Shown: piece by piece, positions 34,556 through 62,636 of the stretch
Layout: every line of letters begins with the position of its first letter
Numbering within the stretch: the first letter of the stretch is position 1
Position numbers and translations under genes: made by a program
Notes under the pieces: model-generated
The model's input: only the letters and a program-made list of their open reading frames with translations
Databases searched by the model: none
Told to the model about the DNA's origin: nothing
IMG/VR virus record: IMGVR_UViG_3300032931_001151
Span: 150,201-214,200 of that record
Length of the DNA: 64,000 nt
Direction: 5' to 3' (one strand)

Positions 34556-35320
34556 GTGGTAGAATATACAATGGAATTTCTAAAAACTATAAAAAACTTC
34601 TTTAAAAGGACTTTAAACATGGAATTATATCTTGTTACTATTGATACAACTTTCTCTCAAAAATTAGGGAAGTCTTTGCAAAATTACGGCATTTGCTTGG
34701 CTAGTGATCCCAACAATGCACGAGAAAGATTTATACAACCTCTTCGTACAAGAGTTCCACCCAACGTTCTTGCAGATATATATCCATATGTATATGCCTA
34801 TAAATTGAGTGACATAACAGAAACAATTAATGACCAACATCCTATGTGGGCATATGTTTCTAATTCTCAAAATAGAAGCGTTGGACAACAAACAAAATAT
34901 CCATTTTTTGTACCAGTTCCTAATACAATAGAATCCCCGCCTCCAATTCAAGAAGTCCAACCTACCGCACCCCCAATTCCTATCGTTGAAGAGTTTAAAG
35001 CCCCCGATGGAGTAACGGATCCGGTCCAATTAGCTATGTTGAAGACTATGTATGATATGGCCAAAGAAATAAAGAGCTTAAAATCCGCTCCTTCCAACCC
35101 TCAAACAGGCTCAAAAGTATCAATACTTGATTTGGAGTCCCAATTTCGTGCACCACCTCCAGCATCTATTATGCCGGGGTCTTCACCTCTTAATGTTAAT
35201 TCTATACCCGTTCCACAAGTTCCACATGTTACTTCATTTCCTAAAGGAAAAATTGACCGTGAAACGAAAGCAAGGTTAGAACAAAATATGCGACCAAGTA
35301 ACTTTGAAGTTATAGATTGA
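34556..35320 (+). CDS. Proline-rich hypothetical protein between gp44 and gp62
   Basis: ORF in operon; exact start uncertain. Confidence 0.6.
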   Translation: MVEYTMEFLKTIKNFFKRTLNMELYLVTIDTTFSQKLGKSLQNYGICLASDPNNARERFIQPLRTRVPPNVLADIYPYVYAYKLSDITETINDQHPMWAYVSNSQNRSVGQQTKYPFFVPVPNTIESPPPIQEVQPTAPPIPIVEEFKAPDGVTDPVQLAMLKTMYDMAKEIKSLKSAPSNPQTGSKVSILDLESQFRAPPPASIMPGSSPLNVNSIPVPQVPHVTSFPKGKIDRETKARLEQNMRPSNFEVID

Positions 35321-57751: not shown

Positions 57752-57868
57752 ATGACCACTCAAACTAACATTAAGCTTCGCTCGGATAGCAAGCCCTTAT
57801 CATGGGATTCCCATAGTATGTTAGTGTCCCTCTTTAGCATTATGCCAAGCAAGGGACTCCTAGGTTAA
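57752..57868 (+). CDS. 38-aa attenuator leader peptide (8 Ser)
   Basis: AAAGGA SD; MTTQTNIKLRSDSKPLSWDSHSMLVSLFSIMPSKGLLG; stop lies in the 5' arm of the antiterminator. Confidence 0.75.
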   Translation: MTTQTNIKLRSDSKPLSWDSHSMLVSLFSIMPSKGLLG

Positions 57869-57922
57869 GATTCGGACACATCCGATAACTCTTAAACCTA
57901 GGGCCAAAACCCTAGGTTTTTT
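57859..57922 (+). promoter_or_regulatory. Mutually exclusive antiterminator/terminator
   Basis: CCTAGGTTAAGA(57859-70) pairs with TCTTAAACCTAGG(57890-902); AAACCTAGGG(57894-903)-ccaaaa-CCCTAGGTTT plus U-tract. Confidence 0.8.
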
Positions 57923-57979
57923 CGTATTTGACAACTATATAATTGTAGAATAGAAGACATACTCTTTGAGTGTGTCTAT

Positions 57980-58070
57980 GGAGTAGACAATAGGAAAAGT
58001 TCCTAGAGAGTTTGCTAAACTCATCGTGCCTTTTATTAGGCATTCAGTGCGAATCTGAGCTACTCCACCA
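57980..58070 (+). tRNA. tRNA-Ser(GCT), atypical D-arm
   Basis: GGAGTAG/CTACTCC acceptor; loop TT-GCT-AA; long variable arm; CCA. Confidence 0.8.
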
Positions 58071-58072
58071 AT

Positions 58073-58930: not shown

Positions 58931-59019
58931 GGATTAGGCAATTGCAGGAGATGCAACATTGTTTGGAAAACAATTGGGGCCTTTACGGGCCTTTGGAGCG
59001 TAACCAAGCTAATCCGCCA
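58931..59019 (+). tRNA. tRNA-Ser(GGA), atypical D- and T-arms
   Basis: GGATTAG/CTAATCC; ATTGT-TTGGAAA-ACAAT; long variable arm; G73; CCA. Confidence 0.75.
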
Positions 59020-59024
59020 TTTTT

Positions 59025-59114
59025 GGAAATACGGGAACATAGTTGTTCAAATAGTTTCGAAAACTATCCTTGGTCTTAATTGGCCTAACCGTGCGATTCG
59101 GTGTATTTCCTCCA
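59025..59114 (+). tRNA. tRNA-Ser(CGA), 8/4 acceptor/T-stem fold
   Basis: GGAAATAC/GTATTTCC 8 bp; ACCG/CGGT T-stem; TT-CGA-AA; CCA. Confidence 0.75.
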
Positions 59115-59148
59115 ACTTCGTGATATAATAAATAGTACGAGAGGCAAT

Positions 59149-59937
59149 ATGAATATAACAATTGATCACGATAACGATGGTTTTGGCGCACAAATGATGG
59201 GTATTATATCTGCTATAGCATATGCAAAATTTCATGAACATACTTATTATCACACACCAAGAAAAAATATAAAATTGGTTGGGATAGAAGAACCTCAGAA
59301 TGCGGAGATTGATAAAATTAATGAGTTTTTAAACACATTTATGAAAAATTTGGGAATAAATTTAATGCCATCTGAAATTTTACTTGACGGAGAGGGTAAA
59401 CCAAAATTTACATGTGAAGTTAGGCCACATTTTCATGACGAAATATATTACAACGGATCAAACTATTATACGAAAGAATTTAATACATATCTAAGACAAA
59501 ATTATCCACTTACTAAACCTAACTATTATGAAAATATGCATAATATAGCAATTCACATTAGAAGGGGATCTGATATAGATTCACCATCGCAACGGCATAA
59601 TAGATGGATTGATTCAAACGTTTATAATTGTCTTATAGACTTAATACACGTAAAATATCCAAATAGTATTATACATGTATTTTCTTGGGGTGATCCAGAA
59701 ATAGAGATAAAACCGTTCATAGTATTTCATTCATCAAATAGTGGTTCAACATTTTTAGATGACTATAATGCATTAGTTTGGGCCGACATATTGGTAGTGG
59801 GGTCAAGTACTTTTAGTCTTTCTGCCGCTCTTATAAACAATAATAAAATAATAATTGATGGGGCATTTTATAAATTAAATGGTATGTACATACCAAATGA
59901 ATGGATGCAAAATTTTAAAGAATTTTATGTAATGTGA
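59149..59937 (+). CDS. GT11-like (alpha-1,2-fucosyl/colitosyl-transferase-like) glycosyltransferase
   Basis: DGFGAQ; IAIHIRRGSD; ADIL..G.STFS; true start after the tRNA-Ser(CGA). Confidence 0.75.
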   Translation: MNITIDHDNDGFGAQMMGIISAIAYAKFHEHTYYHTPRKNIKLVGIEEPQNAEIDKINEFLNTFMKNLGINLMPSEILLDGEGKPKFTCEVRPHFHDEIYYNGSNYYTKEFNTYLRQNYPLTKPNYYENMHNIAIHIRRGSDIDSPSQRHNRWIDSNVYNCLIDLIHVKYPNSIIHVFSWGDPEIEIKPFIVFHSSNSGSTFLDDYNALVWADILVVGSSTFSLSAALINNNKIIIDGAFYKLNGMYIPNEWMQNFKEFYVM

Positions 59938-59986: not shown

Positions 59987-60078
59987 GGATCGGTGAGTGA
60001 GCGGTCAAAACTAGAAATTTACTAAATTTCCGATCCCAGAAATGGGGTCCGTAGGTTCGAATCCTACCCGATCCGCCA
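59987..60078 (+). tRNA. tRNA-Ser(ACT)
   Basis: GGATCGG/CCGATCC; GAAAT-TTACTAA-ATTTC; long variable arm; G73; CCA. Confidence 0.85.
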
Positions 60079-60081
60079 TAT

Positions 60082-60174
60082 GGAGAGAACAACCGAGAAT
60101 AGTTTTCGGCACTGATTTGAAATCAGAGGGTTCCGTGCAAACGGGATAAGGTGCGATACCTTGGCTCTCCACCA
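60082..60174 (+). tRNA. tRNA-Ser(TGA), extended D-stem
   Basis: GGAGAG/CTCTCC; CTGA-TTTGAAA-TCAG; long variable arm; CCA. Confidence 0.75.
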
Positions 60175-60176
60175 TC

Positions 60177-60204
60177 TTGACAATATATTAAAATATGCTA
60201 TAAT
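60177..60204 (+). promoter_or_regulatory. Sigma70 promoter with extended -10 directly upstream of the suppressor tRNA
   Basis: TTGACA-16 nt-TATAAT with TG extension. Confidence 0.75.
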
Positions 60205-60214
60205 GAACTCACAT

Positions 60215-60286
60215 GGGTCATTGACCGAGTGGCACAGGTGATGGGTTCTAAACCCATTTAGAAGTGTTCAAATCACTTATGACTCA
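60215..60286 (+). tRNA. Amber suppressor tRNA (anticodon CTA)
   Basis: GGGTCAT/ATGACTC; ATGGG-TT-CTA-AA-CCCAT; AAGTG-TTCAAAT-CACTT; A73; followed by CAA, not CCA. Confidence 0.8.
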
Positions 60287-60319
60287 CAATTATAAATAAA
60301 CACTAGCAAAGGAGCTAAT

Positions 60320-60430
60320 ATGATTGCTTAGAAGAAATTAGAATATGGGTAGGTAGGTTGTCGTGGACCTCCTATTTGTTATTGGTTGAATAATCTCAAA
60401 TTAACACCAATAACAAGGAATATAATATGA
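60320..60430 (+). promoter_or_regulatory. Leader ORF with two in-frame UAG codons, coupled to the downstream gene
   Basis: AAAGGAG SD; MIA*KKLEYG*VGCRGPPICYWLNNLKLTPITRNII-TGA; TGA overlaps ATG 60427; hairpin 60376-60416 abuts and covers the downstream SD. Confidence 0.7.
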
Positions 60431-60855
60431 ATAAAAAAGAATTGATTGCTAAGATTAAAGAAGAAATTAAAGTCACTTCCGAGATCCTTAGAATAAATAA
60501 AAAGACTCACAAACAAAACCAAAGAATGTATTCACAAGGCACAAGACCTTTTGAGTTAATTCAACTTTATCCGTTTGATGTGGAAAAGGTAACACCTTTT
60601 AATCATAATTATGTAAAAGTAATTGATGGAAAACATTATTGGAACTATAGTTACAACGAAACTCCATGCAATGCGGGCATTGAGTCGGCAAAGTGCCACT
60701 TGACTTGTCTACATATTGTGTATAATATGCTTCGTACAAAAAAGACGCATTGCCACAACATTGAAAGGAATGATTATTATGTTAAATATTTTGATAAGCT
60801 CATACAAGGATATCTTAGCCAAGTGGAAGAGGAACAAAATGTTGTCGTATCCTGA
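60427..60855 (+). CDS. Hypothetical protein preceding the PTH2-like gene
   Basis: AAGGA SD; LHIVYNMLR motif. Confidence 0.65.
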   Translation: MNKKELIAKIKEEIKVTSEILRINKKTHKQNQRMYSQGTRPFELIQLYPFDVEKVTPFNHNYVKVIDGKHYWNYSYNETPCNAGIESAKCHLTCLHIVYNMLRTKKTHCHNIERNDYYVKYFDKLIQGYLSQVEEEQNVVVS

Positions 60856-61210
60856 ACCACCATCTTTAGAAGAAGCACTAAAACAAGTTAGAATGTATGT
60901 TTTAGTAAGAAGGGAAATTTTACCTTTAGTCCATTGTGTTTGTCAATGTACACATGCGGTAGCCGAATTTATTCATTATCATCAAAATGATAATACTAAA
61001 TTATGGGTTACATGTGAAAAAACTTTAATTGTTTTAGAAGCGACGGAAGACCAAATAAAAGAAAAAATGATTTGGTTTGCTGACCGTCATATGAATTATC
61101 AACCTTTTTGTGAACCGGATATGAATAATGTTCTAACGGCGGTTGCGTTTCAACCAATTACAAAACAAATTGGTAATGAAGTTTTTGGTAACTTAAAGCT
61201 TCTAAAATAA
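60839..61210 (+). CDS. Peptidyl-tRNA hydrolase, PTH2-like phage family
   Basis: YVLVRR; Q..HAVAEF; W.....LIVL; F.EPDM...LTAVA. Confidence 0.7.
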   Translation: MLSYPEPPSLEEALKQVRMYVLVRREILPLVHCVCQCTHAVAEFIHYHQNDNTKLWVTCEKTLIVLEATEDQIKEKMIWFADRHMNYQPFCEPDMNNVLTAVAFQPITKQIGNEVFGNLKLLK

Positions 61211-61223
61211 TATTTAAAAATGA

Positions 61224-61262
61224 CCCGTCCAAGTATAAATAAGTTTATAACACTTGGACGGG
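61224..61262 (+). promoter_or_regulatory. 11-bp hairpin enclosing a late promoter and sequestering the SD of the endonuclease gene
   Basis: CCCGTCCAAGT...ACTTGGACGGG; TATAAATA 61234-61241; ATG 61271. Confidence 0.8.
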
Positions 61263-61270
61263 ACACTATT

Positions 61271-61897
61271 ATGAATGAAAATGTACTTAGAAAAGATAAA
61301 CAAAAATTACATCTTATTAAAAAATTAAGATGTATTATGGATCATGGCGGAAAATGTAAACATTGTGGAAAGGATTTAATAATAAACCACTACGATGCAG
61401 ATTTTCATCATATAGACCCTTCGATTAAAGAAGTTGTGGGGCATTCTTTAATGAATGGGCATTATTACAAAATAAAAAAAGAAGTTGATAAGTGTATTTT
61501 ATTATGTGGATCGTGTCATAGGTATGAACATTGTAAATGGAAAGATTGGATTAATCACAAAGAAGAATTACTTTCTTTAGCAAAAAATATTCATAATAGG
61601 AGAACCATAGAAGATACACAACAACGTATTAAAAAAATTAAAGAATTATATTTAAGCGGTAATGGTATAAGACAAATAGCAAAAATATTAGGAATACCTG
61701 TATCCTCTGTTGGATATACAATTAAGAAATTGGGTATAGGTAGACCATTTATTACTAAAGTGTCTAATGAAGAATTGATAGAATGTTTTAAGCAAGGAAT
61801 GACAGCAAGTGAGGTTTCAAAAAAATATAATTGTTGTTATGCAAACTGTTGTAGAAAACATAAAAAATGGAGAAATAAAAAAAGTAAGCTGCTATAG
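61271..61897 (+). CDS. HNH-type homing endonuclease with C-terminal HTH domains
   Basis: CKHCG; DFHHID; CILLCGSCHRYEH; GIRQIAKILG. Confidence 0.8.
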   Translation: MNENVLRKDKQKLHLIKKLRCIMDHGGKCKHCGKDLIINHYDADFHHIDPSIKEVVGHSLMNGHYYKIKKEVDKCILLCGSCHRYEHCKWKDWINHKEELLSLAKNIHNRRTIEDTQQRIKKIKELYLSGNGIRQIAKILGIPVSSVGYTIKKLGIGRPFITKVSNEELIECFKQGMTASEVSKKYNCCYANCCRKHKKWRNKKSKLL

Positions 61898-62267: not shown

Positions 62268-62270
62268 TTT

Positions 62271-62393
62271 CTCTAGATGCATTAAAGGATTACACCAAAC
62301 AGTGGATTGTAGGTTCAACTCCTACCAAGTGAAAGCTTGTAGCTTAATTGGCAAAGCAACCGTCAAAAACATCTTTTAAACTTTTTGCTAGAG
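62271..62393 (+). ncRNA. Circularly permuted tRNA-like RNA (T-arm, loop-closed acceptor stem, D-arm); Y-RNA/YrlA-like architecture
   Basis: GTAGG-TTCAACT-CCTAC; CAAGT-GAAA-GCTTG; TA-GCTT-AATTGGCA-AAGC. Confidence 0.65.
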
Positions 62394-62405
62394 AATCTTT
62401 TTCAT

Positions 62406-62499: not shown

Positions 62500-62636
62500 G
62501 TTGTCGTGTAGCTCAGTGGTTAGAGCGAATTTTTGAGGAAACGAGAAATTGTTTCTAGGTCGCAAATAGTGACCGTTCAAAATTGTGCGGGTAAAAATGT
62601 CTTTAGTGACATGGTTCGATTCCCCCTACGACAACA
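62500..62636 (+). ncRNA. tRNA-like RNA with a branched insert replacing the anticodon loop
   Basis: GTTGTCGT/ACGACAAC; canonical D-arm GCTCAGTGGTTAGAGC; TTCGATT T-loop; no 7-nt anticodon loop. Confidence 0.6.

Follow-up and report, generated by a model that had tools for sequence, protein, structure and literature searches.

Small upstream ORFs that end near an R-[A/G]-P-P ribosome-arrest core are known from the SecM, ApdA, ApdP, ApcA and CruR peptides and the Streptomyces lividans set (PMC7897499, PMC10951233, PMC10987492, PMC12992588), where the ribosome-binding site of the downstream gene sits in a stem-loop that a stalled ribosome would open and where the regulated genes can have diverse functions. 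These examples are bacterial secreted or membrane proteins of 50-200 aa that contain no stop codons and whose arrest is relieved by pulling force or a ligand. The locus described here is phage-borne and has a leader peptide of only about 17 aa without a signal sequence, and its R-G-P-P core could be reached only after suppression of two UAG codons. In the ermCL and cat leaders a ribosome stalled on a short leader likewise melts a hairpin that sequesters the Shine-Dalgarno (SD) sequence of the next gene, although there the stall needs an antibiotic, whereas here it would need a suppressor tRNA.

Stop codons serve as regulatory signals in several described systems. In prfB an early in-frame UGA turns the competition between release factor and an alternative decoding event into control of downstream synthesis, but it uses a +1 frameshift promoted by a slippery codon and an internal SD, with a single stop and no arrest or hairpin, and it regulates the release factor (RF2) itself; in the present leaders the codons after both TAGs continue in the zero frame in all variants, and the downstream genes are not release factors. 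PepNL of Escherichia coli (PMC11890864) is a short arrest peptide whose regulatory state depends on read-through of a stop codon by a tRNA, but with the opposite logic, since it arrests at the UGA stop by blocking RF2, near-cognate Trp-tRNA read-through cancels the arrest, and no dedicated suppressor tRNA is involved. Switches in which a UAG in a leader peptide makes downstream expression depend on an orthogonal suppressor tRNA have so far only been built synthetically (Liu et al. 2011, reviewed in PMC6412442); these were engineered in tna and trp leaders and act on transcription termination, and the present locus would be a natural translational counterpart with two UAGs. Phages that recode stop codons also encode a tRNA(CUA), whose use is suggested to time late functions (bioRxiv 10.1101/2021.08.26.457843; PMC10879173), but in those phages TAG is reassigned across many late genes, whereas here no other in-frame TAG was found in about 64 kb plus about 85 kb of relatives, and no theta or HDV-like ribozyme lies next to the tRNA. 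Finally, phage PTH2 genes are found in tRNA-repair and ribosome-rescue islands (PMC7824862); here too a PTH2-fold gene sits among tRNA genes, and in relatives it lies beside Thg1, SpoU, tRNA-ligase CPD, peptide deformylase and a tmRNA. No regulated leader has been described for such genes, and the PTH2-like gene of Aeromonas phage CC2 stands alone, without a leader or a nearby CUA tRNA in the annotation.

The locus lies on the + strand of a 64 000 nt stretch (the window, positions 150 201 to 214 200 of IMG/VR record IMGVR_UViG_3300032931_001151). A first-pass annotation, made from sequence alone, had proposed a stop-codon-sensing switch consisting of a CUA-anticodon tRNA, a leader with two UAGs, two hairpins and a peptidyl-tRNA hydrolase-like gene, and every sequence feature that it listed is indeed present. 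A consensus sigma-70-type promoter at 60177-60204 (TTGACA at 60177-82, a 16 nt spacer, then TGcTATAAT with the -10 at 60199-204) matches at 12 of 12 positions with an extended -10, and the hexamers are kept while the spacer varies in relatives' loci L003, L004, L006, L009 and L076-78 (L numbers designate the loci compared). It is followed by the tRNA at 60215-60287, by TATAAATA, a T4-type late-promoter-like box, at 60291-60298, and by the SD AAAGGAG at 60308-60314, 5 nt before the leader ATG. The late-type box occurs 16 times in the window, mostly 15-45 nt upstream of an SD and ATG, and at this site it is kept in L003-L009, L076-78, L080 and L081.

The leader begins with ATG ATT GCT at 60320 and meets its first TAG at 60329-31; the KKLEYG codons then lead to a second TAG at 60350-52, and V-G-C-R-G-P-P follows at 60353-60373, with the RGPP core (CGT GGA CCT CCT) at 60362-73, where the predicted stall has its P site at 60368-70 and its A site at 60371-73. 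The frame stays open to TGA at 60428-30, which overlaps the ATG at 60427. A frame open for 36 codons apart from TAGs is not rare in DNA of 32 % G+C (we estimate about 0.1 per frame), but the full signature M-x(1-6)-TAG-x(4-9)-TAG-x(1-6)-[RLD][AGD]PP occurs once in the window and not at all in 20 shuffled windows, and it recurs in every true homologous locus examined.

The decisive evidence comes from these relatives, in which conservation of the two in-frame TAGs had been singled out in advance as a point on which the proposal could fail. In 16 distinct versions of the locus, 12 of them found only through homology of the first downstream protein, both stops are always TAG (32 of 32) and never TAA, TGA or a sense codon, although TAG ends only 10 of 68 ORFs in the window and 15 of 156 in relatives. 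The first TAG follows 1-4 sense codons and is followed by A in 15 of 16 variants. [E/D]-Y-G precedes the second TAG in 16 of 16, with synonymous variation (TAT or TAC, GGG or GGA, GAA or GAG), and two to five codons later comes RGPP in 13 variants including the window, RAPP in L017, RDPP in L078 and LDPP in L009. Arginine is encoded by CGT, CGC, CGA or AGA and proline by CCT, CCC or CCA, and spacer lengths change only by whole codons, a pattern that indicates codon-level selection downstream of both TAGs. RGPP and RAPP are published arrest cores refractory to EF-P (PMC12992588, PMC10951233), RGPP being the strongest and the most avoided tetrapeptide, and RDPP is arrest-permissive (PMC12992588); the LDPP of L009 is a Pro-Pro stall motif but not an RxPP core. 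Composition predicts 4.5e-6 such cores per site, and there is one R[AG]PP in 19 111 aa of window proteins. Leader DNA is 79-90 % identical where the adjacent gene is 65-66 % identical.

The next gene's SD (AAGGA, 60415-19) is contained in a hairpin at 60370-60419, with its 5′ arm at 60376-86, its 3′ arm at 60406-16 and an extension in which UCCU at 60370-73 pairs with AGGA at 60416-19; its MFE is -14.2 kcal/mol, with z about -4 against shuffles. In all 16 variants a hairpin sits at the same place, the 5′ arm beginning 3-9 nt after the first Pro codon and the 3′ arm covering or abutting the SD, with dG of -11 to -17 and z of -2.4 to -5.5. No compensatory base changes were seen within alignable groups (the L009 group among them), and support for the structure rests instead on the non-homologous helices found at this position in other lineages. 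A second, upstream hairpin (60347-60374) pairs GGGUAGGUAGGU, which contains the second UAG, with ACCUCCUA, the Pro codons, and thus offers an alternative partner for the anti-SD-like CCUCCU. It appears in the MFE fold of the whole leader in the window, L003 and L004, with small analogous stems in L016, L056 and L017, but its role is inferred only. No Rfam family matches the leader, even with lax filters.

The tRNA is of type I, has the anticodon loop UUCUAAA (7 nt, with U33, C34-U35-A36 and a purine at 37) and does not encode CCA; it was found by ARAGORN and scores 51.9 bits against the Rfam tRNA model RF00005 (gathering score 29). A CUA-anticodon tRNA sits within about 1 kb in 23 of 26 loci carrying the module, the other three being truncated, and there is none in 381 kb of unrelated loci. 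It lies upstream of the leader in T4-like relatives and downstream of PTH2 in the L016, L056 and L054 lineage. The tRNA has G1:C72 and is not Gln-like at position 1, the discriminator is A, G or U in different relatives, and no close paralogue exists among the other phage tRNAs (at most 64-72 % identity), so that this comparison leaves its amino acid, and even its charging, undecided.

The first gene downstream (60427-60855), which we call X, encodes a 142 aa orphan protein with the motif LT.LHI.YN.LRNKK.H.H. Thirty-five homologues were found, none of them named; there is no matching Pfam, PHROG or NCBIfam family, and a model with pLDDT 84.7 has no match in PDB or BFVD. X was absent from 50 697 records of cultured phages, no close DNA relatives were found among phage records, and searches of IMG/VR with X, with PTH2 or with the alignment returned only the window's own contig. 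A doubtful homologue without a leader (L079) also lacks the tRNA and PTH2, and the first ORF in the L016 lineage is not detectably homologous to X.

The second gene (60839-61210) overlaps X by 17 nt and encodes a 123 aa protein with a predicted PTH2 fold; a protein with this fold follows in most lineages. Whether this ORF is PTH2-like had likewise been set out as a test of the proposal, and it passes the Pfam PF01981 threshold (30.1 bits, cutoff 23), as do 6 of 7 relatives. The profile hits Pth2 2zv3 at E 1.4e-5, and the top 12 PDB matches of an AF2 model (pLDDT 89) are all Pth2 (3erj, 2zv3, 1q7s, 1xty, 1wn2, 1rlk) at TM 0.72-0.82 and rmsd 2.1-2.8 Å. However, orthology to cellular Pth2 is not supported, since the NCBIfam equivalog NF003314 gives 13.2 bits against a cutoff of 126 and identity to solved Pth2 is 16-21 %. 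Catalytic competence is not supported either, in that the loop aligning with GMGKGK of the Methanocaldococcus jannaschii protein (2zv3) lacks its Lys residues; activity was not assayed.

We favour, with a probability of about 0.6, the reading that the locus is a translational switch built from four parts that travel together: a UAG-reading tRNA, a roughly 17-codon arrest leader of the SecM/ApdA type, an SD-sequestering hairpin, and an operon of an orphan protein and a PTH2-fold hydrolase. In this view ribosomes start on the leader and meet UAG at codon 4; if RF1 wins they leave, and the SD of X stays paired, in part to the CCU CCU Pro codons themselves. If the phage tRNA(CUA) decodes this UAG and the second one 7 codons later, the ribosome would make ...E-Y-G-x-V-G-C-R-G-P and stall, covering the Pro codons and the 5′ arm of the hairpin, which starts 8 nt downstream, and so freeing the SD. 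Other ribosomes would then translate X and, by coupling through the 17 nt overlap, the PTH2-like enzyme. Two UAGs in series would make the output depend roughly on the square of suppression efficiency and so filter out background read-through.

The sequence features and their conservation, the tRNA and the PTH2 fold are established by this analysis, and arrest by RGPP and RAPP in other peptides is published, whereas it is inferred that the tRNA is charged and decodes these UAGs, that this peptide stalls, that the stall opens the hairpin and what X and PTH2 then do, for which recycling of peptidyl-tRNA or rescue of ribosomes seems most likely. No experiment was performed: arrest on this peptide was not measured and the amino acid inserted at UAG was not identified. 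Arrest by RAPP-like cores also needs a suitable N-terminal neighbour (PMC12992588), and the one present here is untried. Only 13-17 residues precede the core, so that the whole chain would lie inside the exit tunnel; there is no signal peptide or transmembrane segment to allow force-dependent release, and no other means of release was identified. In the window-type leader the naked-RNA MFE pairs CCUCC with the region of the second UAG, which leaves only 2 of the 5 SD bases inside the main helix, and the OFF state may therefore leak; moreover, TAG still ends about 15 % of genes, which would be read through. The interpretation in the first-pass annotation is partly supported: dependence of downstream expression on reading two UAGs, membership of the cognate CUA tRNA in the same unit, occlusion of the downstream SD by the hairpin and a PTH2-type hydrolase among the outputs are borne out by comparative evidence, but the conserved arrest core directly upstream of the hairpin had been missed.

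Its more specific proposal, that read-through carries the ribosome through the hairpin to a stop overlapping the start of X, which is then translated by termination-reinitiation without a special role for RGPP, seems unlikely. The leader stop does overlap or lie within 5 nt of the main ATG in the window, L004, L006, L007, L009, L076-78 and L081, and a translating ribosome would also melt the hairpin. However, the leader ends right after PP in L016, 2 codons after it in L080, 3 codons after it in L011 and inside the loop in L056, is fused in frame in L003, and runs 23-53 nt past the ATG in L054 and L017. After PP the reading frame relative to the hairpin arm differs between the window and L003, so the peptide there is not conserved, and this model does not explain the conserved [E/D]YG-x...RGPP.

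About equally improbable is that the mechanism is as we propose but that the physiological signal is host RF1 activity, lost or inhibited during infection, with the tRNA merely a constant co-factor, in parallel with the sensing of RF2 by prfB. The outcome at UAG is a competition between RF1 and the tRNA; the Gly before the second UAG is fixed, mostly as the rare codon GGG (12 % of Gly codons), release after Gly is slow, and the tRNA has its own constitutive-looking consensus promoter. Sequence alone does not separate this from the favoured reading, though no RF1-targeting gene was identified, and X is an orphan.

General reassignment of UAG in late genes, as in crAss-like and Lak phages, with the leader being just a small late gene or an N-terminal extension, is still less likely. 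It would fit the suppressor tRNA and the TATAAATA box before the leader, and a public gene caller translated the L003 version with TAG as Q, fused to X (proteins P0001 and P0006). Nevertheless, in the window, including ORFs behind TATAAATA boxes, there is no gene interrupted by TAG, and TAG flanked by 50 or more open codons on both sides is no more frequent than TGA or TAA there or in the loci of 8 relatives, although 150 kb of the 214 kb contig were not examined. TAG ends 15 % of the window's ORFs, and the in-frame fusion exists only in L003. Least likely is that the TAGs are ordinary stops behind a translated mini-ORF of 2-5 codons, a bar-like minigene or ribosome-loading site (short minigenes such as lambda bar load Pth), with the remainder conserved as RNA structure or a protein-binding site, because, although the nucleotide core GAATATGGGTAGGT is strongly conserved, GGG is fixed in 14 of 16 variants and a local stem involves the second UAG, the switching of Arg between CGN and AGA codons, the other synonymous changes and the whole-codon indels point to selection on the encoded peptide, and the exclusive use of TAG and the linked CUA tRNA would go unexplained.

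If the favoured reading is correct, this is the first natural regulatory leader whose arrest motif is gated by stop-codon suppression and the first arrest-peptide switch described in a phage. It would give phage suppressor tRNAs a function other than genome-wide recoding, link a strongly avoided stalling motif to translation quality-control genes and give an orphan protein family a testable context, and it offers a compact natural part, a tRNA plus about 110 nt of leader, for UAG-dependent gene switches of the kind that synthetic biology built by hand. A more speculative possibility, which we consider doubtful although it is not excluded, is that the four parts form a self-contained cassette that moves between unrelated phage backbones, in which the CUA tRNA is not used to recode genes at all but is a dedicated regulatory key or timer for one arrest leader. 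The leader would then act as a monitoring substrate for its own products, with X and the PTH2-fold enzyme resolving the RGPP-stalled complex or acting on the suppressor itself, and so closing a feedback loop on peptidyl-tRNA hydrolysis, ribosome rescue or amber suppression during infection.

Some further readings were examined and rejected. A first pattern scan, with a spacer that did not suit the window-type leader, gave mostly chance matches in Gly/Val-rich genes, and 39 of 45 hits in a metagenome scan were due to chance. A MotA-box middle promoter in ATTGCTTAG plus TAGAAT has the wrong spacing (7 nt against about 12), and the box is absent from L009-type leaders. Frameshifting at GGG-UAG-G is contradicted by the zero-frame continuation of all variants. 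The motif TATAAATA(A)ACACTA..AAAGGA, which had been noted as common to this leader and the leader at 57752 that it was said to mirror, is literally shared with 57725, but the ACACTA similarity is not conserved in relatives, and the supposed mirror is a conserved ORF of 38-40 aa with its own terminator and no TAG or RGPP.

The contig IMGVR_UViG_3300032931_001151 is 214.2 kb long and the window forms its last 64 kb. It derives from a distant T4-like myovirus of about 32 % G+C and encodes a family-B DNA polymerase, a split topoisomerase II, a gp46-like nuclease and a DnaB-like helicase. The best match to the polymerase in 50,697 phage records is only about 30 % identical, and there are no close DNA relatives. 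Positions 58-64 kb hold a tRNA island with 18 ARAGORN calls, and the features listed in the first-pass annotation of this region were all found to be present. These include a perfect TTGACA-16-TGcTATAAT promoter (60177-204), a tRNA with anticodon CUA (60215-287), TATAAATA at 60291-98 and AAAGGAG at 60308-14, followed by ATG ATT GCT TAG, six codons, a second TAG and a frame that stays open down to a TGA overlapping the ATG at 60427. An 11 bp hairpin (60376-86 / 60406-16) and a smaller stem that joins the region of the second UAG (UAG2) to ACCUCCUA are also present. The downstream ORFs encode a 142 aa orphan protein, here called X, and a 123 aa protein. A profile search had been proposed as the test of whether the latter is PTH-like, and it passes the Pfam PTH2 threshold; its AlphaFold model (pLDDT 89) matches only Pth2 structures, at TM 0.72-0.82.

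X has 35 homologues in public metagenomes, none of which is annotated. Two of the database entries (P0001 and P0006; positions 150-683 of locus L003) had been called with TAG translated as Q and begin MIAQKKLEYGQV..., which is the leader fused to X, and this prompted us to retrieve the corresponding DNA. Automatic choice of genetic code on short contigs can therefore hide this kind of leader. Eleven further distinct loci (L003, L004, L006, L007, L009, L011, L076, L077, L078, L080 and L081) were obtained through protein homology alone, and four more (L016, L017, L054 and L056) from DNA-pattern scans; since that pattern presupposes the core motif, the latter four are ascertainment-biased for it and are treated as such. 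With the window this gives 16 distinct leaders, of which 12 are free of pattern bias. All 16 have a start codon, one to four sense codons and a TAG, followed by A in 15 of 16, then six to seven codons ending in [E/D]-Y-G and a second TAG, and after a further two to five codons the sequence R-G-P-P (13 leaders), R-A-P-P (L017), R-D-P-P (L078) or L-D-P-P (L009). The signature is unique in the window and absent from 20 shuffled windows.

Conservation of the two in-frame TAGs in relatives had been set out in advance as a test of the stop-codon-sensing idea, and both stops are TAG in 32 of 32 cases. Elsewhere TAG ends only 10 of 68 long ORFs in the window and 15 of 156 in the relatives' loci, where TAA dominates, and a stop that only had to stop would drift to TAA. 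The codons after each TAG vary synonymously (Tyr as TAT or TAC, Gly as GGG or GGA, Glu as GAA or GAG, Pro as CCT, CCC or CCA), Arg is encoded by CGT, CGC, CGA or AGA and thus crosses the two Arg codon families, and all length differences are of whole codons. This pattern points to selection on a peptide that can exist only if both UAGs are decoded. The leader DNA is also as conserved as, or more conserved than, the flanking genes, with 79-90 % identity where X is 65-66 % identical.

A component that the first-pass annotation did not report is the arrest core. RGPP and RAPP are the cores of a described class of bacterial ribosome-arrest peptides (Fujiwara et al., PMC12992588; Morici et al.). 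Fujiwara et al. show that RAPP and RGPP support arrest in several peptide contexts in vivo and in PURE systems, that the arrest is refractory to EF-P, and that RGPP is generally the strongest core. RGPP is the most avoided tetrapeptide in many bacterial phyla, RDPP is an arrest-permissive variant, and such motifs sit near the C-termini of small ORFs upstream of diverse genes (PMC12992588). RAPP-like cores do need a compatible upstream segment, and the segment present here has not been assayed for this. By composition R[AG]PP is expected at 4.5e-6 per position here, and it occurs once in 19,111 aa of window proteins; this one, the only R[AG]PP besides that of the leader, is at residue 198 of a 254 aa ORF (34556-35320).

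With CCT 60368-70 in the P site, a ribosome covers roughly the next 12-15 nt, a span that includes most of the 5′ arm of the hairpin at 60376-86. When the RNA from the Pro codons to the start of X is folded alone, the Pro codons themselves (UCCU, 60370-73) pair with AGGA of the SD (60416-19) and extend the helix, although the OFF state of the window-type hairpin may leak. The same arrangement holds in all 16 variants, with the 5′ arm starting 3-9 nt after the first Pro codon, the 3′ arm covering or abutting the SD, dG of −11 to −17 kcal/mol and z of −2.4 to −5.5. The helices are not homologous between lineages (TTGTTATTGG/CCAATAACAA, TCTTATCTC/GAGATAAGA, ATATTGTCT/AGACAATAT, CCTTGTATG/CATACAAGG, CCTTGTTGTT/AACAACAAGG, CTTGGG/CCCAAG and CCTTTG/CAAAGG), and within the one group that can be aligned there are no compensatory changes, so that the structural argument rests on convergence of position and not on covariation.

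A single CUA tRNA lies within about 1 kb of the leader in 23 of 26 module-bearing loci, the other three being cut off by contig ends, and there are none in 381 kb of unrelated loci retrieved in the same study. It sits just upstream of the leader in the T4-like relatives, directly after the PTH2 gene in the L016, L056 and L054 lineage, and in L017 it is separated from the leader by a patatin-like gene; the linkage therefore survives rearrangement. The tRNA is of type I with the anticodon loop (U/C)UCUAAA, the loop context favoured by efficient amber suppressors, a point that was not tested here. Its discriminator base varies and it has no close paralogue among the phage tRNAs, so the amino acid that it inserts was not identified, and its charging is assumed. 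In L004 (859-931) and L007 (3189-3263) the suppressor tRNA has a replaced T arm (CCGGG-AUCGUAC-CCCGG) that lacks the usual TTC, and similar non-canonical T loops occur in other tRNA-like elements of these phages.

The predicted structure of X is confident (pLDDT 84.7) and mostly helical with one small beta-hairpin, but it matches nothing in PDB or BFVD. X of L017 is a true homologue (hhalign probability 97.6 %), whereas the first ORF of the L016 lineage is not detectably homologous. The PTH2-fold gene is homologous across all lineages that have it, although it is missing after X in L009 and L078, and it is far from cellular Pth2, the NCBIfam equivalog scoring 13 bits against a cutoff of 126. 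Neighbouring genes in the relatives are tRNA- and translation-related. In L080 (1113-4351) the module is flanked by a SpoU methylase, a Thg1-like gene and a gene for a tRNA-ligase CPD domain, a tRNA-repair neighbourhood; peptide deformylase genes lie downstream in L009, L076, L077, L078 and L081; and in L077 a phage-encoded tmRNA (1368-1739; tag DDSVEYAMAA) lies about 1.2 kb upstream of the suppressor and leader module. This fits the proposal of Iyer et al. that phage PTH2 serves ribosome rescue and tRNA recycling (PMC7824862).

We favour, with a probability of about 0.6, an arrest-peptide translational attenuator of the SecM/ApdA/ermCL type, gated by two UAG codons that the linked tRNA must decode in competition with RF1. 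In this view suppression would lead to a stall at RGPP, the stall to exposure of the SD, and this to synthesis of X and the PTH2-type protein. Two UAGs would give a roughly quadratic response and suppress noise from near-cognate read-through, and a long-lived stall would let rare successful read-throughs license many initiations. Gly before UAG2 and A after the first UAG are contexts that disfavour release and favour suppression, respectively. The upstream stem between the UAG2 region and the Pro codons may act as an anti-anti-SD, although we have nothing further on its role. The sequence features and their conservation are what the analysis demonstrates; all of the evidence is comparative and predictive, and the course of events proposed here, from decoding to output, is inferred from it. 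The reason for a PTH2-type output is likewise only inferred: the enzyme may clear peptidyl-tRNA produced by suppression and stalls, and it may release this very stall, which would be a feedback loop.

The suggestion that downstream expression depends on reading of the UAGs is supported by the comparative evidence, but not in the form first proposed. The quantity sensed could be the amount of charged suppressor (a timer) or falling RF1 activity, which the analysis did not separate. The earlier proposal that read-through carries the ribosome through the hairpin to re-initiate on X is unlikely as the general mechanism, since the place where the leader ORF ends is not conserved: relative to the start of X it is +1, +5, −4, −19, −43, −49, +23 or +53 nt, or the leader is fused in frame. 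General recoding of TAG is less likely still, since no gene in the window is interrupted by TAG, including ORFs behind TATAAATA boxes, and TAG between two open stretches of at least 50 codons is no commoner than TGA or TAA in the window or in eight relatives' loci, although the other 150 kb of the contig were not examined.

The individual parts (a suppressor tRNA, an RGPP arrest core, an SD hairpin and PTH2) are all of known kinds, but we did not find their combination described. Full-text searches on RGPP arrest in bacteriophages returned nothing, and those linking suppressor tRNAs, peptidyl-tRNA hydrolase and phages returned only general recoding papers. The nearest natural case, PepNL, uses read-through to cancel an arrest (PMC11890864), and the nearest case in logic is synthetic (PMC6412442).

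The parallel that had been drawn with a second leader at 57752 does not hold. That ORF (57752-57868; 38 aa) sits behind a TATAAATA box, is followed by a strong terminator of its own (57894-57919) and contains no TAG or RGPP. It is a conserved gene of 38-40 aa, kept as an ORF in L006 and L007 with an in-frame 6 nt indel, and no function is assigned to it; the ACACTA similarity after TATAAATA is not kept in relatives.

Two segments of roughly 95 nt (60081-60176 and 57979-58072) end in CCA and fold into five-arm, type-II tRNA-like cloverleaves with anticodon-like loops reading UGA and GCU (Ser) and odd D and T loops; neither ARAGORN nor the Rfam tRNA model calls them, although ARAGORN does call a tRNA-Ser(tga) at the homologous position in L009 and L077. 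The stretch 59017-59112 is 90-93 % identical to L006 and L004, where ARAGORN calls a tRNA-Ser(cga) (L004 524-613), but it is not called in the window, where it overlaps the start of the listed ORF 59101-59937. A tRNA-Ser with the unusual anticodon ACU (A34; 59987-60078) is conserved across relatives, including L004, L005 (a further relative's locus), L006, L007 and L076, directly upstream of the suppressor unit. L007 also carries a tRNA with anticodon UUA (1791-1862), which is ochre-suppressor-like, and an odd tRNA call with a 2 base anticodon (1517-1588). At 62270-62397 and 62502-62634 there are a sub-threshold YrlA (Y-RNA-like) match (35 bits; gathering score 69) between tRNA-Arg and tRNA-Leu and a weak, over-long tRNA match (24 bits over 133 nt), which may be a tRNA with an insertion. 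An HNH endonuclease with a C-terminal HTH domain (61220-61897), whose gene ends in TAG, is inserted between the PTH2-like gene and tRNA-Thr; it is absent at this position in L006 and L007 and is thus probably a mobile homing-type gene.
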